64,000 bases of DNA from Macrostomum lignano (lineage: Eukaryota), in assembly GCA_002269645.1 (NCBI GenBank), contig NIVC01000440.1, positions 248,001 through 312,000 of the forward strand, read 5' to 3'. Below the pieces are notes generated by a model. That model was not told the origin of the DNA and did no database searches. It saw only the letters and a list, made by a program, of their open reading frames with translations. Positions 14,287 to 51,289 of the stretch are shown in pieces (position 1 is the first letter of the stretch; each line of letters starts with the position of its first letter). Position numbers and translations under genes: made by a program.

Positions 14287-14674
14287 TTAACAGCTGTAGC
14301 AGGGACAACGTTCGGCCACATAATTGCTGTAATAATTTTGTTCGCTGACGCAGTACCTGCGGTAGCGACCGCCTTGATGGATGCAGTGGATTGTACAGAT
14401 GATTTTCCAGGTGTTTCTGGGGTCTGAAAAAAACACAAATAGTTTACTGGGCATTGGTTATAGAAAGAGTTAGAAAGAATTTTGAAACATTTGCATCTTT
14501 AGTCCGACTCGAAAAACGGTTCAACTTACACACGACATTGCTGGGCAGGCGTCTCTTGTTGGCCAGGTGGTCGCTAGCGGCCGGATCAATCAGCGGATGG
14601 TTCCTGCTGATAGGTGAGGCACTAGAAGCAGCAAAGCCCAACAGACAGACGGTAGCAAGCAGCAGCAGATTCAT
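14287..14674 (-). CDS. Defensin-like cysteine-rich prepropeptide 1 (exons 14674-14530 and 14423-14287), 93 aa
   Basis: MNLLLLATVCLLGFAASSA / SPISRNHPLIDPAASDHLAN-KRR / LPSNVVYPRNTWKIICTIHCIHQGGRYRRYCVSEQNYYSNYVAERCPCYSC. Consensus GTAAGT donor and TTTTCAG acceptor, phase 1, with AATAAA downstream at about 14104-14109. Confidence 0.8.
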
Positions 14675-22806: not shown

Positions 22807-25609
22807 ATGGCTCTGCACCGACTTAGCTCAGCTTGCAATAGAATGTTTCTATCAGCATCAGTAGTGCAGACTGCCAGCGGACTACGCAGCCTGTCATCCG
22901 CAGGCGGACTGGCTGACAAATTCACCAAGGCGCAGTCAGCTCTGCAGCGGCTCACTGAGGATCCCGGCAATGCTGCCAAGCTGAAGATCTACAGCCTGTA
23001 TAAGCAGGCCACGGAGGGCAAGTGCACCAAGCCGAAGCCGGGATTCACCGATTTCGTTGGCCGAGCCAAATGGGACGCCTGGAGCGGCCTTGGGGACATG
23101 ACCAAGGATCAGGCTATGCAGCAGTACATTGACCTGGTGGAGTCCATGGGCGGCAAGCTGGATGCTCCCGATACTACTGCCGATACTACTAATCCCGCCG
23201 ATTCTAATACTGCGTCTGCTGATTATAAGGTACAAGCTTATTGATTGTGAAATATTTATTAAAATAACTGCATTTTTTGTTTTGCTGAAGATTTTCCTGT
23301 CTGAAGATTTTCTAATGACATTTCTCTGCAAGATTAGCTGTCATGCGCTCACTGATAGGCAGCTTGCTCTGTAGCTGGCGCCCCTCTGTAGCTGGCGCCC
23401 CTCTGTAGCTGGCGCCCCCTCTGTATCTGGCGCCCCTCTGTAGCTGGCGCCCCTCTGTAGCTGGCGCCCCTCTGTAGCTGGCGCCCCTCTGTAGCTGGCG
23501 CCCCTCTGTAGCTGGCGCCCCCTCTGTATCTGGCGCCCCTCTGTAGCTGGCGCCCCCTCTGTAGCTGGTGCCCCTTCTGTAGATGGCGCCCCTCTGTAGC
23601 TGGCGCCCCTCTGTAGCTGGCGCCCCCTCTGTAGCTGGCGCCCCTCTGTAGCTGGCGCCCCCTCTGTAGCTGGCGCCCCTCTGTAGCTGGCGCCCCCTCT
23701 GTATCTGGCGCCCCTCTGTAGCTGGCGCCCCCTCTGTAGCTGGTGCCCCTTCTGTAGCTGGCGCCCCTCTGTAGCTGGCGCCCCTCTGTAGCTGGCGCCC
23801 CCTCTTTATCTGGCGCCCCTCTGTAGCTGGCGCCCCTCTGTAGCTGGCGCCCCTCTGTAGCTGGCGCCCCTCTGTAGCTGGCGCCCCCTCTGTATCTGGC
23901 GCCCCTCTGTAGCTGGCGCCCCTCTGTAGCTGGCGCCCCTCTGTAGCTGGCGCCCCTCTGTAGCTGGCGCCCCCTCTGTATCTGGCGCCCCTCTGTAGCT
24001 GGCGCCCCTCTGTAGCTGGCGCCCCTCTGTAGCTGGCGCCCCTCTGTAGCTGGCGCCCCCTCTGTATCTGGCGCCCCTCTGTAGCTGGCGCCCCCTCTGT
24101 AGCTGGCGCCCCTCTGTAGCTGGCGCCCCCTCTGTAGCTGGCGCCCCCTCTGTAGTTGGCGCCCCTTCTGTAGATGGCGCCCCCTCTGTAGCTGGCGCCC
24201 CTCTGTAGTTGGCGCCCCCTCTGTAGCTGGTGCCCCTTCTGTAGATGGCGCCCCCTCTGTAGCTGGCGCCTTCTCTGTAGCTGGCGCCCCCTCTGTAGCT
24301 GGCGCCCCTTCTGTAGATGGCGCCCCCTCTGTAGCTGGCGCCCCTTCTGTAGATGGCGCCCCTCTGTAGCTGGCGCCCCCTCTGTAGATGGCGCCCCCTC
24401 TGTAGCTGGTGCCCCTTCTGTAGATGGCGCCCCCTCTGTAGCTGGCGCCTTCTCTGTAGCTGGCGCCCCCTCTGTAGCTGGCGCCCCTTCTGTAGATGGC
24501 GCCCCCTCTGTAGCTGGCGCCCCTTCTGTAGATGGCGCCCCCTCTGTAGCTGGCGCCCCCCTCTGTAGATGGCGCCCCCTCTGTAGCTGGTGCCCCTTCT
24601 GTAGATGGCGCCCCCTCTGTAGCTGGCGCCTTCTCTGTAGCTGGCGCCCCCTCTGTAGCTGGCGCCCCTTCTGTAGATGGCGCCCCCTCTGTAGCTGGCG
24701 CCCCTTCTGTAGATGGCGCCCCCTCTGTAGCTGGCGCCCCCCTCTGTAGCTGGCGGCCCCTCTGTAGCTGGTGCCCCTTTAGTTGGCGCTCCTGGATATA
24801 GGTGGATTAAGTTTTAACTACTTTAACTACTTCTAGCTACTAGTTGTAACAGTAAATTTAAGAACTATAAAAAAGGGTCCGAGCGAGGTCTGTTTTTACA
24901 TACGACATAATTATGTTTGCATGCACTCAAGGTTCAAATATCCGAATCTCAGTTACTGCAGCAATTCTCATTCGCATTGGTTTAAAAGACAATAAATGAA
25001 ACGTTGCATTTTTAGCACTAAAAGTTTGTTTTGTCTTTATTTTTTTGCCGTTACTTAAAACCAAGACCTAACATTAACAACATCTAAGGTCAATTGAGAG
25101 GATTCCAATATTTACAATATATAAAGATTGTTAAATTTTCATTTTGCTACTGTAAGTAGACGATTGCGCAGAAACTTAATTATGTATTTTTATTTACTTT
25201 CAGGAAGCTCTAGTATCCATCTCGCCTAGCGGGGTGCTTTGGTTCACCCTGAATCGGCCAGCCAAGAAGAATGCCATCTCAACCGATCTGTATGCTGAAT
25301 GGTCCAAAGCGATGGAGCAGGCCGCCGCTGACGACAAGGTCAAGGCTATGGTCATCACCGGTGCCGGGGAGTATTTCAGCTCCGGCAACGATTTGTCCAG
25401 CTTCACCAATTTAAAGCCCGGCGTCACCATGGAGCAGATGGCCGCCGATGGTAACGCCATTTTGCGTCGCTTTGTTGCGGCATTTATCGACTTCCCCAAG
25501 CCGTTGATTGCGCTGGTTAATGGGCCCGCGGTGGGCATCTCTGTGTCCACGCTGGGCCTGTACGATCAGGTGAGTCTTTTGAGAACTGGGCGCATTGGTT
25601 GGAAATGAG

Positions 25610-25662
<53 letters not shown>

Positions 25663-25678
25663 CGATAGATAGATAGGC

Positions 25679-25741
<63 letters not shown>

Positions 25742-25774
25742 CAGATAGATAGATAGATCGATAGATAGATAGGC

Positions 25775-25821
<47 letters not shown>

Positions 25822-27825
25822 CAGATAGATCGATAGACAGATAGATAGATAGATAGATAGATAGATGCAGACAGGTAGGTAGATAGTTAAGCTTTAACAA
25901 TAAAGTCAATTAACTTCCTAACTCCCTAATCGCAGGTGTTCGCCTCCGACTCAGCCACATTCCACATGCCATTCTCCTCGCTGGGCCAAACTCCCGAAGG
26001 CTGCTCCTCCTACACCCTGCCCCGCATCATGGGCCTGTCGGCTGCTGCCTCCCTGGTCATGTTCAACCGGAAGATCTCCGCCCAGGAGGCGCTGTCCTGC
26101 GGCCTCGTTAGCCGGGTCTTCCCGGCTGCCTCCTTCGCCGCCGAGGCCGGCGCCGCAGTTGAAGAGATTGCCGCCCTGCCCAGACAGGTGAGCGCCGGCC
26201 ATCTGCTAATTTTTGCTTAACCGATTTGTTCACTGGATGCACTGATCTCATTAATTCAATTTTCTGCTGCGGAGAGCTAGCTAGCGTAAAATTGTTTTCA
26301 GATTTTTAGAAGCCTACTGTTGTAACTTTTCTCTCTCCCTTCCTCTCCTATCTCCCTCTCTCCCTTCTCTCTTATCTCCCTCTCTCCCTTTCTCTCATAT
26401 CTCCCTTCTCTCTTATCTCCCTCTCTCCCTTCTCTCTTATCTCCCTCTCTCCCTTTCTCTCATATCTCCCTTCTCTCTTATCTCCCTCTCTCCCTTCTCT
26501 CTTATCTCCCTCTCTCCCTTTCTCTCATATCTCCCTTCTCTCTTATCTCCCTCTCTCCCTTCTCTCTTATCTCCCTCTCTCCCTTTCTCTCATATCTCCC
26601 TTCTCTCTTATCTCCCTCTCTCCCTTCTCTCTTATCTCCCTCTCTCCCTTTCTCTCATATCTCCCTTCTCTCTTATCTCCCTCTCTCCCTTCTCTCTTAT
26701 CTCCCTCTCTCCCTTTCTCTCATATCTCCCTTCTCTCTTATCTCCCTCTCTCCCTTCTCTCTTATCTCCCTCTCTCCCTTTCTCTCATATCTCCCTTCTC
26801 TCTTATCTCCCTCTCTCCCTTCTCTCTTATCTCCCTCTCTCCCTTTCTCTCATATCTCCCTTCTCTCTTATCTCCCTCTCTCCCTTCTCTCTTATCTCCC
26901 TCTCTCCCTTTCTCTCATATCTCCCTCTCTCCCTTCCTCTCCTATCTCCTTCTCTCCCTTCCTCTCCTATCTCCCTCTCTCCCTTCTCTCTTATCTCCCT
27001 CTCTCCCTTTCTCTCATATCTCCCTCTCTCCCTTTCTCTCATATCTCCCTCTCTCTCTCTCTCTCTCGCCTATCTCCCTCTCTCCCTTCTCTCTTATCTC
27101 CCTCTCTCCCTTTCTCTCATATCTCCTCTCTCCCTTCCTCTCCTATCTCCTTCTCTCCCTTCTCTCTTATCTCCCTCTCTCCCTTCCTCTCCTATCTCCC
27201 TCTCTCCCTTCCTCTCCTCTCTCCCTCTCTCCCTCTCTCTCCTATCTCCCTCTCTCCCTCTCTCTCCTATCTCCCTCTCTCCCTTCCTCTCCTATCTCCC
27301 TCTCTCCCTTCTCTCTTATCTCCCTCTCTCCCTTTCTCTCTTATCTCCCTCTCTCCCTTCTCTCTTATCTCCCTCTCTCCTTTTCTCTCATATCTCCCTC
27401 TCTCCCTTCCTCTCCTATCTCCTTCTCTCCCTTCTCTCTTATCTCCCTCTCTCCCTTCCTCTCCTATCTCCCTCTCTCCCTCTCTCTCCTATCTCCCTCT
27501 CTCCCTTCCTCTCCTATCTCCCTCTCTCCCTTCTCTCTTATCTCCCTCTCTCCCTTTCTCTCTTATCTCCCTCTCTCCCTTCTCTCTTATCTCCCTCTGT
27601 CCCTTTCTCTCTTATCTCCCTCTCCTTTCGTCTCCCATCTGCCTCTCTCCCTCTTCTATCTCTTTGCAGACGCTAATTTACGCCAAGCAGCTGTTGCGAG
27701 AGCCAATCAGAGCGGAGCTGCACGCCACTAACGAACGGGAGTGCAACCGGCTGCAGGAGCGCTGGATATCCGAGGACTGCTTCAATGCTGTGGCGAAATT
27801 TTTCTCGCGAAAGTCTAAGCTTTGA
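22807..27825 (+). CDS. ECI2: Enoyl-CoA delta isomerase 2 (ACBP + crotonase domains), 4 exons (22807-23229, 25204-25569, 25936-26187, 27670-27825)
   Basis: ACBP motifs [14 protein letters not shown] and GRAKWDAW; crotonase motifs [26 protein letters not shown] and [16 protein letters not shown]-terminal mitochondrial-like leader, C-terminal PTS1 -SKL, and three phase-0 GT-AG introns. Confidence 0.95.
23370..24790. repeat. 18/19-bp satellite (ctctgtagctggcgcccc), ECI2 intron 1
   Basis: Direct inspection. Confidence 0.95.
25609..25866. repeat. (GATA)n microsatellite, ECI2 intron 2
   Basis: Direct inspection. Confidence 0.97.
26329..27660. repeat. Polypyrimidine CT-rich tract with a 65-bp higher-order period in its first half, ECI2 intron 3
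   Basis: catat recurs at 26396, 26461 and 26526. Confidence 0.92.
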
Positions 27826-33498: not shown

Positions 33499-33717
33499 GG
33501 GGCGCCAGCACCAGGGGCGCCAACACCAGGGCCGCCAGCACCAGGGGCTTTAGCACCAAGGGCGCCAGCACCAGGGCCGCCAGCACCAGGGTCGCCAGCA
33601 CCAGGGGCTTTAGCACCAAGGGCGCCAGCACCAGGGTCACCAGCACCAGGGTCGCCATGCAGCACCAGGGTCGCCAGCACCAGGGGTCACCAGCACCGCA
33701 CCCTGGCTACGCCACTG
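33499..33717. mobile_element. MITE remnant: right TIR plus a 15-bp GGCGCC-core tandem array
   Basis: ctggctacgccactg (33703-33717) differs by one base from the TIR of the 5843-6254 element and is preceded by ggggcgccagcacca repeats. Confidence 0.65.
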
Positions 33718-33994
33718 CATCAGAGCTGCCTGAATCAATATAAATGTAGTAGAAAGCTAATGTTGATCTGGATTCTTTTTTTATTGCAGGACTGTTCCAT
33801 ACAAATTTGATCCAAGAACACTAAGAGCAATTTAATTCAATTAATCAAAAAAAGGCTATTCTAATTGCCTTGGATGACTCTAGTTAGATAGTTGCGTTTC
33901 GTGAAAGATTCTCACAATCTCGCGAATCCAAGCAATGAGTGTCTCATCTCTGGCAGCCTAATCCGGATTGGCCCGCTACTGATGTGGACTTCAT

Positions 33995-34002
33995 TATAAA
34001 TA
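33995..34002 (+). promoter_or_regulatory. TATA box upstream of defensin-like peptide 2
   Basis: TATAAATA lies 102 nt before the ATG at 34104, with a reverse CCAAT (gattgg) at about 33966. Confidence 0.45.
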
Positions 34003-34103
34003 CTCGCATAGGTGTGACTCTGCGTCCGTACTGCAGCTGACATACTCAAAGATTTTTCAGTAATATTTTCCCTGTCTCAATCAGTTTCGATACTAATTAG
34101 CCA

Positions 34104-34604
34104 ATGCATTCGTCCACTACAATACTGGCAGCTTGCCTTGTGCTGGTGCTAATCAGCGTTGACTATCAGGGTGGCGGAGTTAGCGCCACACCTTTGGCTA
34201 ATAAACCTGGCGAGATACAAACTCACCAAGTCAACAAAAGAGTTTTCTGTAAGTAATAAAGCCAACTGGTTTCAGATTTTAATTTTGCCAGGCAGTCGAT
34301 CGATAAGCTAAGCCAACAACCCCACGCCGCGTGCTAAATGTACATTTAGCTGAGAATGTACAGATTGGAGGGTAGGCAGAAATTCTCTGCTATCTCACCC
34401 ACCTCCCCACTGCGCGCTGAATGTACATTGAATGTACACTCGGAACTTTAAATGCCAATTTCTACCTACTTTCCAGATTTTCACACGGTTTTTCGCTACT
34501 GCATCCGCCGTTGTCGTCAGCACTTTGGCGTCACCGCCGGCTGCGTTGGATACCTGAACATGCCTTTAGGCACCTGCGACTGCGTCTGTTCCAACTATCC
34601 TTGA
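34104..34604 (+). CDS. Defensin-like cysteine-rich prepropeptide 2 (exons 34104-34248 and 34477-34604), 90 aa
   Basis: MHSSTTILAACLVLVLISVDYQGGGVSA / TPLANKPGEIQTHQVN-KR / VFYFHTVFRYCIRRCRQHFGVTAGCVGYLNMPLGTCDCVCSNYP. GTAAGT donor, TTCCAG acceptor, phase 1, with ATTAAA downstream near 34651. Confidence 0.8.
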
Positions 34605-35178
34605 CCTTGAGTCGCAGCCACGGCTGGCCATGACAACTAAAATTAATATAATTAAACATCAAATTCGCTAATTTCAAGTTGCGATGGAAATTACACAACA
34701 ACGAAGTTGACTGTGCTGTTTGCAGTCTGTGATTATAAGAAAATTGAAATGTTGAGATTGAGAATGCCGTATTCAAGCAGAATTTTGCAACTTTTCGTTA
34801 CCTTTCAATTCGAAACAGAAGAACTAAATATACGAGCGCACAATCACAATTACACAAATAACAAATTTCAGAGGGACCCTAAGTCCCAAATTAGGCAAGC
34901 CGGCTCAAAAGCAAATGAATACATTACTAGGTGTCTCTTTTTTACTTTAAAACAAAAAATGCATTTCGCAGAAATTTTTTAGCATAAACTACGAGCGTAA
35001 ATCTGATAGATAAAGTTAGGTTTCAGATTTTTTGGCATTTAAACTTGCTGCGTCTCAATTTTTAGGCTTCAGAACAGAACTGCGAATGAGGCGGCATGTA
35101 GCTGTTTTGCTCAGGGTTGAATTCACAAAAAAGGAAAATGCTTAACTGAGGACTGGCAGTTAAATGAAATAAGGCCGG

Positions 35179-35825
35179 TAGGGTTGCCAACAATACCGTC
35201 CCCTATCAAGAGACAGGGGACGCCCACCAAGAGACAGGGGACGCCCACCAAGAGACAGGGGACGCCCACCAAGAGACAGGGGGCGCCCACCAAGAGACAG
35301 GGGACACCCGCCAAGAGACAGGGGACACCCGCCAAGAGACAGGGGACACCCGCCAAGAGACATGGATGTCCACCAAGAGACAGGGGGCGCCCACCAAGAG
35401 ACAGGGGACACCCGCCAAGAGACATGGATGTCCACCAAGAGACAGGGGACGCCCACCAAGAGACAGGGGACGCCCACCAAGAGACAGGGGACGCCCACCA
35501 AGAGACAGGGGCACCTATCAAGAGACAGGGACGACCACCAAGAGACAGGGGACACCCGCCAAGAGACATGGATGTCCACCAAGAGACAGGGGACGCCCAC
35601 CAAGAGACAGGGGGCGCCCACCAAGAGACAGGGGGCGCCCACCAAGAGACAGGGGACGCCCACCAAGAGACAGGGGCACCTATCAAGAGACAGGGACGAC
35701 CACCAAGAGACAGAGGACACCCGCCAAGAGACATGGATGTCCACCAAGAGACAGGGGCGCCCACAAAAAGACGGGCGCCCACCATGAGACTCGCATATTA
35801 GTGCCCCTAAGAGTTGCAAACCCTG
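35179..35825. repeat. 21-bp satellite (acgcccaccaagagacagggg) with higher-order variants, between imperfect hAT-like inverted ends
   Basis: Array at about 35205-35785. The ends tagggttgccaac and gttgcaaaccctg are imperfect complements; no 8-bp TSD. Confidence 0.85.
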
Positions 35826-36381: not shown

Positions 36382-39300
36382 ATGAAACCACTGAGCATTG
36401 TGGTCACAATTCAGGTGTGCCTGACTGTTGCTTTTCTTGTTTTAAACGGTAAGTTCAATTTATAAACTGTTTTTAATGAGGTAGTGACTTAATAAACAGG
36501 TAAATATTGTATTAGCAGTGGACTTAAATACCCACAGCATGGGTAGGAGTGGACCTAAATATCCACAGCATGGGCAGGAGTGGACCTAAATTCCCACAGC
36601 ATGGGTAGGAGTGGACCTAAATTCCCACAGCATGGGTAGCAGTGGACCTAAATACCCACAGCATGGGTAGGAGTGGACCTAAATTCCCACAGCATGGGTA
36701 GCAGTGGACCTAAATATCCACAGCATGGGTAGCAGTGGACCTAAATACCCACAGCATGGGTAGCAGTGGACCTAAATACCCACAGCATGGGCAGCAGTGG
36801 ACCTAAATACCCACAGCATGGGCAGCAGCGGACCTAAGTTACCCTCAACTCAAACGGTTTGTCAAACAGGTGTCGCAACCGCCAACCCGGCCAACGCTTC
36901 CAAGCCCCGAACCCCGCCGCCACCACCGCCGCCGCCGCCGGTGGTTCTGCCCTCGGTGCCGGGCGGTCGACGCTGCGTGTTCCCGTTCTGGTGGCACGGC
37001 AGGTGGCATCACACCTGCGTGCGGTACGACCTCAAAGGCGAAGAGTGGTGCTCAATCACTGCAAACTTCACTAAAGACGAAAATTGGATGCGGTGCGACA
37101 GTGAGTTGGGAAGTCACGTGACTGCTACGATGACGTCAGCCTGTTAGATATGAGCACTGAGTGTTATGATTGAGTCAGTCTGTTAGACAGAAGTGGTGAG
37201 CATAATGATATAAAGATTTTATTGCCTATATTCGCAATATTTTCCATTTCAGCAATTAATTTTTGTTGCCTAAAGCAAAAACGACAATTTTTGAAATGAG
37301 CTCAGCCGCTCGCAATCTGTTTCCGGTTCAACATCTTTTATCCCTAACTCTAATTGCATCCTGACGGCTATTCGAGAGAAGTGTTCGGTGCACCTTCCAT
37401 CTAATTAACTGGCAGATTAGTCAGAAATAAGGAGCTTTGTTTGAGACAGAGCGTGCCATTTCCGCAACCTTTTAAGCTTGGAAATCTGCAGGAAGTTTGA
37501 ACTCAGACCATCTTTGAGGCTGCTCAATGAAACGTGGGCGTGGGAAATTTCGATAATTTGTTTGATGTTGGCTCCCTTGAAAAGGAAATGCGTTATGCAT
37601 CACGTTTGGAGCGCTCAAAGTAGCTGCTTGAACTGCAAAACTTTACCTGTTAAATATTAAATTTCAAATTTTACAGGACAGATGCTTACCTGTTGCAAGA
37701 CAAGCCCTGAATTTTTATCGAAAAGAGGGGTAACTAGCCTAGTGGTTAGAGCGTCAGACTTACGACTGGAAGGACAGGTCGACCCATTCGAGACAATTTG
37801 TGTCCTTGAGCAAGACACTTAACTCTGCATTGCTTCAGTTCACCCAGCTGTAAATGGGTGCCAGCATTAGCTGGGGTAATTGAGGGTGTGTGTGGCGACC
37901 CCCCAGTCCTTGGACTGAACAGCCGTACACAGCCTTCAGATGATTTTTCACCTATTTTTCCCAGGCCACGACAAGAGCCGCTTCCACTGTCGCATTACGT
38001 TCGCCTACGGCGGCCGCCTGCACTACAGCTGCCTGCAACTGTCTATGGCCGGACCTACTCCCGTTGCTCCGGCGACCAGCGGCTTCTGGTGCGGCCTGAA
38101 AGCCTCGATCGCCTCGGTCAGCTGGTCGAGCAGAGACTGGGCCTTCTGCGAGTCCACCAACGCCACCACCGCTGACTATTTGAAGGCTGTCGGCTGGCAC
38201 CGGGGCCTGACGGGCGCCAGGCTGGAGGCGCTGCTCAAGATCGCTAGGCATCGGAATGCCGTGCAGAGCGAGGCCGCCGAGGTCGCGAGTTCGAATCACG
38301 CAGCGGCGGGAGCGGCAAAGGCGGTCGCAGCCAGCGATTCATCCGGTGGCGTCGAAGGCGGCGAGGGCGAGGGTGCCGGAGACGATGGCGGCAGCTCCAG
38401 GTGGGGCGTCGGCCTGGTTGTGTCGCTTGGTGTCGCCTGCGGCTTGCTGACCTTGGCGGTGGCCATCACCGGCTGCGCTGTGCACAGGCGCTACTTCAGG
38501 TGAGCTGGACGGCTGGCTCATTTCAGGAGCTTCGGCGGTGCCAGGGACGCATCACAGCTCTCTTGGTGGGCGCCCCTGTCTCTCTCGGTGGGCGCCCCTG
38601 TCTCTCTCGGTGGGCGCCCCTGTCTCTTGGTGGGCACCCCTGTCTCTCTTGGTGGGCGCCCCTGTCTCTCTCGGTGGGCGCCCCTGTCTCTCTTGGTGGG
38701 CACCCCTGTCTCTCTTGGTAGGCGCCCCTTTCTCTCTTGGTGGGCGCCCCTGTCTCTCTTGGTGGGCGCCCCTGTCTCTCTTGGTGGGCGCCCCTGTCTC
38801 TCTTGGTGGGCGCCCCTGTCTCTCTTGGTGGGCGCCCCTGTCTCTCTTGGTGGGCGCCCCTGTCTCTCTTGGTGGGCGCCCCTGTCTCTCTTGGTGGGCG
38901 CCCCTGTCTCCTGGTGGGCGCCCCTGTCTTTTGGTGGGCGCCCCTGTCTCTCTTGGTGAGCGCCCCTGTCTCTCTTGGTGGGCGCCCCTGTCTCTCTTGG
39001 TGGGCGCCCCTGTCTCCTGGTGGGCGCCCCTGTCTTTTGGTGGGCGCCCCTGTCTCTCTTGGTAGGCGCCCCTGTCTCTCTTGGTGGGCGCCCCTGTCTC
39101 TCTTGGTGGGCGCCCCTGTCTCTTGGTGGGCGCCCCTGTCTCTTGGTGGGCGCCCCTGTCTCTTGGTGGGCGCCCCTGTCTCTTGGTGGGCGCCCCTGTC
39201 TCTTGATTGGCGCCCCTGTCTCTTGATTGGCGCCCCTGTCTCTTGATTGGCGCCCCTGTCTCTTGATAGGCGCCCCTGTCTCTTGATAGGCGCCCCTGTC

Positions 39301-40194
39301 TCTTGATAGGCGCCCCTGTCTCTTGATAGGCGCCCCTGTCTCTTGATAGGCGCCCCTGTCTCTTGATTGGCGCCCCTGTCTCTTGATAGGCGCCCCTGTC
39401 TCTTGATAGGCGCCCCTGTCTCTTGATAGGCGCCCCTGTCTCTTGATTGGCGCCCCCGTCTCTTGATAGGCGCCCCTGTCTCTTGATTGGCGCCCCTGTC
39501 TCTTGATTGGCGCCCCTGTCTCTTGATAGGCGCCCCTGTCTCTTGGTGGGCGCCCCTGTCTCTTGGTGGGCGCCCCTGTCTCTTGGTGGGCGCCCCTGTC
39601 TCTTGGTGGGCGCCCCTGTCTCTTGGTGGGCGCCCCTGTCTCTTGGTGGGCGCCCCTGTCTCTTGGTGGGCGCCCCTGTCTCTTGGTGGGCGCCCCTGTC
39701 TCTTGGTGGGCGCCCCTGTCTCTTGGTGGGCGCCCCTGTCTCTTGGTGGGCGCCCCTGTCTCTTGGTGGGCGCCCCTGTCTCTTGGTGGGCGCCCCTGTC
39801 TCTTGGTGGGCGCCCCTGTCTATTGGTGGGCGCCCCTGTCTCTTGGTGGGCGCCCCTGTCTCTTGGTGGGCGCCCCTGTCTCTTGGTGGGCGCCCGTCTT
39901 TGGTTGGCGCCCCTGTCTTTTAGGCCAGTGGTGAGGGTGGCAAAGGTTGAGCTCACTGTCTTTTGTCGAGCCTGGCTGCCTCTTTCATTTAGTTTTTGGA
40001 GAAGCGCAGGTTTTGTGAGGCCGAATGAGGGGGGGGGGTCCCTGTACATGTACATGTATAACAGCGCCCAGTTTGTAACACAAATTTCAGAGGCCGGTAC
40101 AAGCGCGTCGACCCGCTTCTCACCTCTGACTCGATGGAGAGAAGCGGCTACGGAGGCGTCGATGCCTACCACGACTGACAATTACCGTTTCTAA
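36382..40194 (+). CDS. Type I membrane protein with two fibronectin type II-like modules, 4 exons (36382-36448, 36870-37100, 37965-38499, 39924-40194)
   Basis: Signal MKPLSIVVTIQVCLTVAFLVLNG, a proline-rich stalk, CVFPFWWHGRWHHTC...EWCSITANFTKDENWMRC (FN2 consensus), a second CRITFAYGGRLHYSC...FWCG module, and TM WGVGLVVSLGVACGLLTLAVAITGCAV followed by HRR. Intron phases 1, 1 and 2 are compatible. The last exon is the least certain. Confidence 0.72.
36515..36835. repeat. 31-bp minisatellite (gcagtggacctaaatacccacagcatgggta), FN2 gene intron 1
   Basis: Direct inspection. Confidence 0.9.
37726..37944 (+). mobile_element. tRNA-derived SINE (family 1) with a conserved-core-like central domain
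   Basis: A-box tagcctagtggttag and core gtgtccttgagcaagacacttaac...gcttcagttcacccagctgtaaatgggt. A second copy lies at about 51935-52085. Confidence 0.75.
38555..39920. repeat. 20/22-bp satellite (ggtgggcgcccctgtctctt), FN2 gene intron 3
   Basis: Same family as the 35.2-35.8 kb array, in opposite orientation. Confidence 0.95.
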
Positions 40195-41330: not shown

Positions 41331-41877
41331 TATTGAATGAAAGAATATTTCTGGCTTTTGACCTTATCATGAGAACTAAGCCATTTTTGAGTTGTTGATC
41401 GTGAAATCGTTATTCCTATTATATAAGCTAAATATGTTTTATTATCAAATCGAAGACAAAATATACAAAGCTCGTTTGTTGTAGTTCAATTTTAAAATTT
41501 CATTTGGGGAATTAATTAAAAGTATAAAAAACAATAATAATGTGGTCTTTTGAGTTCTTCTTGTAGTTTAACTCAGCTCAGAATATGCATACATGTACAT
41601 GGACGAGCTACATGTAAGTCGTCTTTGGCTAAACACCGTTGCATATCTGCCCCGAGCGTACACCGGTCACCAGCTCAACTTAGTTAAAGAGTAAACTGCA
41701 CTCGCAAGCCACTTTGCTTTTCAAACTTCTCAAGCCCGGTGAGCCCAACCCAAGTCTCTATTGTTCTCCTGGATTCAACGTGCGCGTTATGCACTGAGCT
41801 AGGCAGAAGACTGCGATATAAGCATTAGCTACTCTCTCTTGTGTGAGCTGCAAGCTAAGCTACAGCTCTATTCGATC

Positions 41878-44045
41878 ATGTCCACTGCCGAGCAGCTGAG
41901 CGAGGAAGAACTGGCTCTGTACAAAGCCGCCTTCGGCATCTTCGATCGGGACAGTGACGGGTCCATCACGGCGGCGGAGCTGGGCTCGGTGATGCGGTCA
42001 CTGGGGCGGCATCCTTCAGATGCCGAGATTAAGGTTAGTATACCTGCATGTCATATTTAATTAGTAGGTAAAAAACATTTCTTACAGGGAGCGTTTTACA
42101 AGCCCGAATCTTCACAGGGTTGAATCTTTACAAGCTCGAATCTTCACAAGATCGAATCTTCACAAGCTTGAATCTTCACAAGCTCGAATCTTCACAAGCT
42201 CAAATCTTCACAAACTCAAATCTTCACAAGCTCGAATCTTCACAAGCTCGAATCTTCACAAGCTCAAATCTTCACAAGCTCGAATCTTCACAAGCTCAAA
42301 TCTTCACAAGCTCGAATCTTCACAAGCTCAAATCTTCACAAGCTCAAATCTTCACAAGCTTGAATCTTCACAAGCTCGAATCTTCACAAGCTTGAAACTT
42401 AACGACACATTTCCGAAAAGTCTTGCTGGCCACTTTCGCTAGTTCACAACTTAAGATGAATTCAATATTATAAAATTTCGAACTTGTGAAGTTTTGAGAT
42501 TATAAAAAGCGAATCAAGGGCAACTTTATCACTCAGGATGGGAGTCTCGCAATTTATGGTGAAAAAATCACGAGGTTCGTTTAAATGCAGTGCAGTGTTC
42601 TATGGCCAAGCCGTACTGCAGATCCCACAGACACAAAATCACCGACGACAAGGCAAGGACTACACTAGTCAAAAAACACACAATTTTAGTACGAGCCAGC
42701 TACCCTGTTACTGCCGATTTTTAAATAATCTTTCAGTCCTGGGATCTCGCACATCATGTAACATGACCAAGACTTTCAAATTTCTCGTGTGCAAACCGAC
42801 CAAAAATTGAAAGCAAAAAATCGCTGCTGGGGAGAAAGTTTCCTATGGCTAAAAGATTTTAGATTGATTTAGTGCGAAGCCAGCGTCTGTGTTAAATCCT
42901 CACTTAGTGCAATGCTAGCAACAATATTCATTGACTGCTCAAGTACAGTCTGAAGCACTGTACATTGAATCGTATAGTACGATGGGTGTCCAGAGAAAGT
43001 TCTGACACTTTTAATCTCAGAGCAAAATGAATTCAGTCGCGGGTATTTTGATCATTTCACTCAAAAGAATAAAAAAATAAAAAGTGATATTGAATATTTT
43101 GTCCTCAAAAAAACGAATCATATTCATAAAGTCATATTCATCATCATCATCAACCCTCAAGGCAGCCTTCTCAACCTGTAGCAACACACACTTTTCCCAT
43201 TGCTTGAGCATTCTGTAACTTCGGCCTTCTTTCGATTGTAGACTCACGATGATGTCAATAATCATAAAAATAAAAAAAACTTGACTAATTAAGTAAACTT
43301 TCGCAAGGTGCAAACACAGTGAGATTTGCTTACGGAGTGTATAAAATACTCAACAGAGAAGGGGTGGACGGTAAGAGAGGGATGCACTGTACATCAGAGC
43401 CGTTTTGTGTACACTCGTACTTGCGTACTGCAAAGAAGATCCATAAAAAACTGACTAAGTTATGTTCTTCACCTTTTACTGTAAGACTATCAGTGACATT
43501 GCGATGGCTTTTCACACACATCACTTTTGAATGAAATGATCAAAATACACGCGACTGAATTCATTGGAAAGAAGAGACGTGCCGCTTAAAAATGACACTA
43601 ATCTGGGATTAAGCTAGTCAGAACTTTCCGGAAACACCTCGTACATTGTAGAATACCTCCTTTGGTCCTACTGTTTAATAATAAAGAGTCCCTGAAAACG
43701 CAGGAGATGATCAACGAGGTGGACGAGGACGACAACGGCAGCGTGGACCTGTCCGAGTTCCTCACCCTGATGCTGCGCAAAACCAGCGACGCGGATGCTG
43801 AAGAAGAGATCCGCGAGACTTTCCGCGTGTTCGACAGAGACGAGGACGGCTATTTGTCCGTCAAGGAGCTGCGTCACGTGATGTCCTGCCTGGGCGAGGA
43901 GGTCAGCGAAGTCGAGGCCGTGAAGATGCTGCTCACAGCCAAGGCGAAGAATGGCGGCGAGTCCGGCAGCGTCTCGAACTCCGAGGAGCTGCTGGTGAGC
44001 TTCGATGAGTTCCGAGCGTTGGCCACTGGCCAGAACTGGCCGTGA
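41878..44045 (+). CDS. Calmodulin-like protein, 2 exons (41878-42033 and 43704-44045), 165 aa; EF-hand 4 degenerate
   Basis: EF loops [24 protein letters not shown] and [12 protein letters not shown]; calmodulin-like [12 protein letters not shown] and [12 protein letters not shown]; phase-0 GT-AG intron. Confidence 0.9.
42100..42395. repeat. 16-bp minisatellite (ctcgaatcttcacaag), calmodulin-like gene intron
   Basis: Direct inspection. Confidence 0.92.

Positions 44046-50036: not shown

Positions 50037-51289
<1,253 letters not shown>

Follow-up and report, generated by a model that had tools for sequence, protein, structure and literature searches.

Does the flatworm Macrostomum lignano possess a defensin-like host-defence peptide? 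The question is raised by a two-exon gene at positions 34104-34604 of a 64-kb stretch of the M. lignano contig NIVC01000440.1 (eukaryotic DNA, hereafter the window, to which all positions refer), which the initial annotation had described as a hidden defensin-like gene. The gene corresponds to BOX15_Mlig034330g3 (Mlig034330, copy g3) and very probably encodes a real secreted cysteine-rich peptide. A cysteine-stabilised alpha-beta (CS-alpha-beta)-like fold appears to us somewhat probable for this peptide, and an antimicrobial role conceivable but rather doubtful. Among the explanations considered, we tentatively favour a lineage-restricted, secreted host-defence peptide with a non-canonical defensin-like (cis-defensin-like) fold.

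The coordinates of the gene and of the features around it are collected in Table 1. The two coding exons join as 145 + 128 = 273 nt, in frame, into a precursor of 90 amino acids (aa), MHSSTTILAACLVLVLISVDYQGGGVSATPLANKPGEIQTHQVNKR followed by VFYFHTVFRYCIRRCRQHFGVTAGCVGYLNMPLGTCDCVCSNYP. Exon 2 contains the entire and undivided six-cysteine domain (Cys codons from 34500 to 34589), and the phase-1 intron falls 2 1/3 codons past a dibasic Lys-Arg (KR) site. The coordinates, the junctions at 34248/34477, the TATA element, the signal peptide, the propiece, the KR site and the 44-aa peptide of the initial annotation were all verified in the sequence, and its description of the cysteine spacing, of four Arg against one Asp and of an aromatic N-terminus proved correct by direct sequence check. 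The same source had reported the gene as absent from the track of open reading frames (ORFs). This absence is due only to the intron, which leaves each exon as a lone ORF of 50 aa, under the 60-aa default minimum of the ORF lister; the gene itself is annotated in GenBank. The candidate TATA element lies inside a 58-nt block (33978-34035) with zero differences across three genomic copies of the locus, in flanks that vary, which may lend it weak support. A scan for bacterial-type promoters and terminators has no relevance for this eukaryotic DNA.

The gene is catalogued, and the word hidden therefore had to be abandoned. Its 90-aa product matches GenBank PAA82953.1 (hypothetical protein BOX15_Mlig034330g3, Macrostomum lignano) with 100% identity from end to end, and the public gene model on the contig covers an identical 501-bp span. 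Since the annotation of the assembly was made solely from RNA-seq (assembled with genome guidance by StringTie/TACO and also de novo, and passed to TransDecoder; PMC5730564), this identical public model is evidence of a spliced transcript and supports the splicing that had been predicted from the DNA. The product was listed in 2023 by Irvine et al. (PMC10414684, S5 File), in whose table g3 and a second genomic copy, g2, themselves form the antimicrobial peptide (AMP)-like group fAMP-LP-149. This group was positive in 6 of 11 AMP predictors (54.5%), run on a 62-aa form; it was dropped at the 'Same genome' filter and not prioritised, and the cysteine-rich candidates were never synthesised (PMC10414684). 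According to the same authors, AMP predictors over-call cysteine-rich signalling and inhibitor peptides (PMC10414684). They treated the peptide without KR processing and assigned it no fold or family (PMC10414684), and their flatworm AMP-LP table contains no further family members by motif. The gene, its product, the signal peptide and the AMP-like scoring are thus already public. What is new here is the KR/phase-1 architecture common to two other M. lignano genes, a structural prediction and an explicit list of the canonical defensin features that fail.

The putative signal peptide has a hydrophobic core (Kyte-Doolittle 11-residue means reach 3.5), and SignalP 4.1 was positive for this product, with cleavage between VSA and TPL after Ala28 (Irvine et al. 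2023, PMC10414684 S5 File). The KR site occupies residues 45-46; from the sequence we infer that the precursor would be cleaved there, ahead of the 44-aa peptide. The latter has the cysteine array C-x3-C-x9-C-x10-C-x-C-x-C, that is C11, C15, C25, C36, C38 and C40, with four Arg, one Asp, two His and neither Lys nor Glu, a net charge of about +2.9 and a pI of 8.66. By inspection, both orientations of the gamma-core tripeptide are present, C25-V-G (CXG) and G34-T-C36 (GXC).

The fold is suggested by a cysteine-stabilised-helix (CSH) motif, C11-IRR-C15 (CxxxC) with a later C36-D-C38 (CxC); in the CS-alpha-beta motif, CxxxC and CxC are the cysteines C3, C4, C8 and C9 in the reference-array numbering (PMC5116183). 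CxxxC followed by CxC occurs in 5.5% of composition-preserving shuffles, and in 1.3% with defensin-like order and spacing. AlphaFold2, run on the single sequence of the 44-aa peptide, predicts a helix at residues 2-19 and strands at 25-30 and 35-40 (mean predicted local distance difference test score, pLDDT, 81.6; predicted template modelling score, pTM, 0.53). C11 and C15 are placed in the helix, C25 in the first strand and C36, C38 and C40 in the last one. This helix/hairpin prediction is fairly confident, is new here and would place the cysteines of the CSH motif in the elements where they belong. The gene structure points in the same direction: in the defensin genes of arthropods and molluscs, a phase-1 intron next to the exon of the mature peptide is reported to be strictly conserved (PMC6435467).

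We compared the peptide with the CS-alpha-beta defensins of insects, arachnids and molluscs (Phormia defensin A, 1ICA; BmKDfsin3, 5XA6; MGD-1, 1FJN). Like these, it has a secretory prepropeptide with a dibasic site ahead of a cysteine domain of about 40 aa, CxxxC and then CxC, a predicted helix with two antiparallel strands, and a phase-1 intron beside the exon of the mature peptide; nine residues separate the second helix Cys from the beta-1 Cys, the same number as in Phormia defensin A. Unlike them, the flatworm peptide lacks the N-terminal loop and the first Cys, so that the canonical C1-C4 bond is impossible, and bears an extra Cys two residues past CxC. It also differs by a longer hairpin (x10), an 18-residue predicted helix, an aromatic N-terminus and the lack of any profile-level similarity.

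Two further families deserve comparison. The mytilins have the array C-X3-C-X3-C-X4-C-X11-C-X-C-X-C-X2-C (PMC7168163; Mytilin B was verified as 2EEM), whose C-terminal half C-X11-C-X-C-X-C resembles C-x10-C-x-C-x-C here, and they share the one-helix, two-strand fold predicted for the flatworm peptide. A profile hidden Markov model (HMM) of mytilins aligns C11, C15, C25, C36, C38 and C40 to mytilin C1, C2, C4, C5, C6 and C7, with a non-significant score. However, the flatworm peptide has six Cys instead of eight, lacking counterparts of mytilin C3 and C8, and its stop follows four residues past the last Cys. It has an N-terminal propiece in place of an anionic C-terminal extension, is encoded by two exons instead of four and carries a charge of +3 instead of +7 to +10. 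The best whole-domain structural match to the flatworm model, although non-significant, is the nematode ASABF (2d56). A member of this family, ASABF-6Cys-alpha, is a published CS-alpha-beta peptide without the N-terminal Cys in which altered bonding is suspected (PMC5116183). This absence is the likeness between the two peptides; they keep different cysteine subsets, show no sequence similarity and come from different phyla.

Two extra copies of the gene, g1 and g2, are found on other contigs, which gives three near-identical syntenic loci in total (L001-L003), all retaining the ORF, the splice sites, KR and the six cysteines. Compared with g3, g1 differs by I38M, H41R and I58T, and g2 by I58T alone. 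A copy of the peptide 1 gene described below is likewise found on contig NIVC01001855.1, so the whole block has been duplicated; the extra copies fit the large-scale duplication known in the sequenced M. lignano line (PMC5730564). A tblastn search of the window with the precursor as query, and scans of all six frames for the cysteine pattern, found only this gene and the peptide 1 gene. In the phmmer search of representative proteins considered below, one match, to a cysteine-free 636-aa repeat protein aligned in eight stretches, was rejected as spurious. Mlig034330 is most likely confined to its lineage, having diverged beyond the reach of homology searches.

The peptide 1 gene, BOX15_Mlig033545g3, is a second small gene for a secreted cysteine-rich peptide; it lies on the opposite strand of the window (Table 1) and gives a product of 93 aa, identical to the public one and listed as 'Ungrouped' no. 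530 by Irvine et al. (PMC10414684). Its cysteine framework is C-x3-C-x10-C-x14-C-x-C-x2-C, and a paralogue on another contig, Mlig029134g2, is 54% identical with an intron at the same position. Between peptide 1 and the 44-aa peptide BLASTP detected no similarity (E=4), and the two were kept out of one alignment for this reason and because MAFFT mis-registers CxxxC; the AlphaFold2 model of peptide 1 (pLDDT 53) is uninformative. Mlig034330, Mlig033545 and Mlig029134 nevertheless have a design in common: a first exon that measures 142-145 nt counted from the ATG and encodes the signal peptide and propiece, an 'NKR' site in the corresponding position, a phase-1 intron splitting a Tyr codon (T/AY) 2-7 residues past NKR, and a single exon with the framework C-x3-C-x9-10-C-x10-14-C-x-C-x1-2-C. 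This shared design hints at a common gene type; homology is not proven. The rule-based UniProt names of these proteins are inconsistent: g3 and g2 are called 'Invertebrate defensins family profile domain-containing protein' (UniProt/UniRef), g1 'Uncharacterized' despite a mature peptide the same as that of g2, and peptide 1 'ShKT domain-containing', not defensin. Such names should not be taken as family membership for small cysteine-rich peptides.

If the peptide is indeed a host-defence peptide with a cis-defensin-like fold, the following mechanism can be proposed. The signal peptide would be removed after Ala28 and a Kex2/furin-type convertase would cut after Lys45-Arg46, releasing the 44-aa, mildly cationic (+3) peptide with its aromatic N-terminus, which would be oxidised to three disulfides. 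In the predicted structure, the helix with C11xxxC15 packs on the beta-hairpin with C25 and C36xC38xC40. Two bonds would join the helix to the last strand, and the absent N-terminal disulfide would probably be replaced by a bond across the hairpin, for which the extra C40 is the likely substitute partner of C25 in the model. The most likely pairing would be C11-C36, C15-C38 and C25-C40, which is proposed on the analogy with mytilins and because C25 and C40 face each other in the hairpin register of the model. Once secreted, the peptide would act on microbial envelopes; the initial annotation had proposed a functional effector whose specificity would differ from that of peptide 1. The N-terminal loop of some classical defensins contributes to lipid II binding; the flatworm peptide is devoid of this loop, and a membrane-directed or other target would therefore be as likely as lipid II.

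Several results weigh against this reading, beginning with the fold. The structural model is derived from a single sequence. The canonical third disulfide, which completes the fold, joins an N-terminal Cys to the beta-1 (GXC) Cys (C2-C6 of the reference array; PMC5116183), and here there is no Cys in the 10 residues before CxxxC nor in the propiece, which leaves C25 without its canonical partner. The framework of invertebrate defensins, C-X4-15-C-X2-H-C-X6-9-G-X-C-X4-9-C-X-C (PMC6435467), does not describe the peptide: the first Cys is absent, CIRRC lacks the His expected ahead of the second helix Cys, the Gly preceding the beta-1 Cys stands at -1 (A-G) instead of -2, the hairpin spacing amounts to 10 residues and an additional C-terminal Cys is present, so that only X9 and CxC fit. 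Pfam gave no family at E<=10, and a PDB sequence search gave no match. The HMM of 10 PDB-verified defensins and antibacterial factors (ABFs) scored -1.6 bits, a value attained by 918 of 3000 shuffles, and the mytilin HMM 1.1 bits, attained by 251 of 3000. Foldseek against the PDB found no match at E<=0.001, with little statistical power for a 44-residue query. ASABF 2d56 ranks third there (E=1.5, query-normalised TM-score 0.44, 36 columns), also without significance, and the plant defensin AtD90 (7jn6) ranks 33rd. These are the only whole-domain matches to small proteins, which is suggestive but not a test, the others being mostly short partial alignments (20-29 columns, chiefly SH3 domains) or lying inside much larger proteins. 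A published BLAST/HMM survey concluded that flatworms are without CS-alpha-beta peptides (PMC10414684), and our own profile tests repeat this negative at the sequence level. Of the CS-alpha-beta assignment made initially, then, what holds is CxxxC and CxC in the predicted helix and last strand, the phase-1 intron and the UniProt name; against it stand the missing N-terminal Cys, profile scores that do not exceed those of shuffles and the non-significant structural matches.

Other objections concern function, processing and evolution. The peptide had been described as cationic and amphipathic: it is mildly cationic, but its net charge is merely +3 and the amphipathicity of the helix is not significant, the hydrophobic moment of residues 2-19 (0.476) being attained by 13% of shuffles. 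ProP 1.0 predicted no cleavage at KR, hence the 62-aa predicted peptide of Irvine et al. (2023, PMC10414684 S5). We found no data on expression site or activity of Mlig034330 in the literature searched and in the supplements of four M. lignano papers. Phmmer, run exhaustively against 1.84 billion representative proteins, gave no relative beyond the protein itself, and thus no evolutionary evidence of constraint. The exons of the copies show five differences, one synonymous and four non-synonymous nucleotide changes, the latter spread over three codons, and between L001 and L002 the divergence of the exons (1.8%) equals that of the intron (2.2%); at about 2% divergence the copies are too similar for selection to be inferred.

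These objections give room to other explanations, of which the one that we take most seriously, though we think it unlikely, concerns function: whether or not its fold is CS-alpha-beta-like, the secreted and disulfide-rich peptide would serve a purpose other than an antimicrobial one. It might modulate ion channels in the manner of a toxin, act in signalling, or come from glands of the reproductive, adhesive or rhabdite kind. This explanation stays a serious rival because of the charge of only +3 and of a helix that is not significantly amphipathic, and it is favoured also by the loss of the N-terminal loop and first Cys of classical defensins. The CS-alpha-beta scaffold serves scorpion channel toxins too (PMC5116183), the AMP predictors, which Irvine et al. 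say over-call cysteine-rich peptides of signalling or inhibitor type, were barely positive (54.5%; PMC10414684), and a UniProt rule names peptide 1, whose gene has a similar architecture, as a protein with a ShKT toxin-type domain. Against this stand a prepropeptide layout and a phase-1 intron that resemble those of defensin genes, and searches of Pfam and the PDB that found no similar family of toxins, hormones or inhibitors. M. lignano is moreover not known as venomous. That the peptide is instead an ordinary canonical invertebrate defensin of arthropod or mollusc type, as the UniProt/PROSITE rule-based name of g3 and g2 suggests, is far less probable: it would fit the arrangement CxxxC...CxC, the spacing of nine residues and the phase of the intron, but the missing first Cys contradicts it, the framework of PMC6435467 does not apply, neither Pfam (E<=10) nor the profiles give a signal, and the 'Uncharacterized' g1, whose mature peptide equals that of g2, shows that the rule match is inconsistently applied.

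Two further explanations were considered. A transcribed young lineage-specific gene, not kept by selection and without specific function, would account for the lack of relatives outside M. lignano among the 1.84 billion representatives, for the four non-synonymous against one synonymous differences with exons as divergent as the intron, and for the removal of the group as single-genome only in the published pipeline (PMC10414684). We nevertheless regard it as improbable, given the coherent architecture (signal peptide, propiece, dibasic site, even number of Cys, confident predicted fold) and three copies that are all intact, and because two other M. lignano genes with the same exon/intron design and cysteine framework, 54% identical to each other, point to an older, maintained gene type; at a divergence of about 2%, selection could be neither detected nor dismissed. 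Finally, the idea that there is no gene at all, but two chance ORFs with chance splice-like signals, can appeal to the fact that each exon alone is merely a 50-aa ORF; it is practically refuted by an independent transcript-based annotation with exactly the same splice and product, by the three intact copies and by the predicted signal peptide.

The intron and the surroundings of the gene present some particularities of their own. The motif AATGTACA occurs four times in the intron (34337, 34355, 34420 and 34431), which represents 4 of its 6 plus-strand occurrences in the window, and the region 34333-34441 contains a 30-nt internal duplication, 83 nt apart, together with a perfect palindrome. 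This group of motifs could be a cluster of protein-binding sites or a small inverted-repeat element; as a structured RNA, the intron shows no significant fold (z = -0.88) and no Rfam match. Each of the three loci has a fusion gene of ACBP and enoyl-CoA hydratase/isomerase (ECI2-like) upstream; downstream, L001 and L003 have an EF-hand/AIF-1-like gene, none being called within the examined flank of L002. The window as a whole has a very high density of tandem arrays, about 20 with a Tandem Repeats Finder score >=300, and several of the minisatellite arrays have a GGCGCCCC-like core in common. Minisatellite arrays produce long spurious ORFs, for example at 35123-35819, and the dense arrays explain why the composition profile of the window is so extremely skewed in GC and AT.

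Table 1. Position of the Mlig034330 gene, its sequence elements and other features of the window
Feature	Position	Strand	Description
TATA-like element	33995-34002	+	TATAAATA; TATAAA at 33995, 109 nt 5' of ATG
ATG	34104	+	opens coding exon 1
Exon 1, coding part	34104-34248	+	145 nt; donor CT/GTAAGT; ends one base into Tyr codon (T/AT)
Putative signal peptide, residues 1-28	34104-34187	+	MHSSTTILAACLVLVLISVDYQGGGVSA; hydrophobic core residues 6-18
Putative propiece, residues 29-46	34188-34241	+	TPLANKPGEIQTHQVNKR; dibasic KR end, 34236-34241
Phase-1 intron	34249-34476	+	228 nt; GTAAGT...polypyrimidine-CAG; acceptor ...CTACTTTCCAG
Perfect 18-nt palindrome	34333-34350		GCTAAATGTACATTTAGC; inside intron
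Exon 2, coding part	34477-34604	+	128 nt including TGA 34602-34604
ATTAAA, candidate polyadenylation signal	34651-34656	+	47 nt after stop; sequence match only
Peptide 1 gene BOX15_Mlig033545g3	14287-14674	-	exon 1 14674-14530; phase-1 intron 106 nt; exon 2 14423-14287
Flanking annotated genes, upstream	up to 24104-27825		ACBP/enoyl-CoA hydratase
Flanking annotated gene, downstream	41866-44045		EF-hand/AIF-1-like
Minisatellite array	23367-24789
(TAGA)n array	25610-25886
CT-rich 24-mer array	26331-27652
Minisatellite, 15-mer x13	33499-33697		about 400 nt upstream of the gene
Minisatellite, 21-mer x28	35207-35790		about 600 nt downstream of the gene
20-mer array	38559-39918		same repeat family as 35207-35790, opposite orientation
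(AGAC)n array	50286-50706

What would a defensin-like peptide in M. lignano mean? CS-alpha-beta defensins occur from sponges to arthropods, and the survey that reported their absence from flatworms found it somewhat surprising (PMC10414684). A speculative and rather unlikely extension of our favoured reading is that flatworms possess cryptic cis-defensins: Mlig034330, and perhaps Mlig033545 and Mlig029134, would descend from an ancestral invertebrate defensin gene of which the phase-1 intron and the helix-to-strand pair were kept, the N-terminal Cys being lost and the third disulfide rewired across the hairpin. If true, this would explain why BLAST/HMM surveys report the superfamily as absent from Platyhelminthes. 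Should the fold itself prove true, the reported absence would be an artefact of homology searches, in tension with the published conclusion, and the displaced third disulfide would represent a new way of stabilising the scaffold. Mlig034330 would then offer a tractable innate-immune effector in M. lignano, a model amenable to transgenesis and RNA interference.

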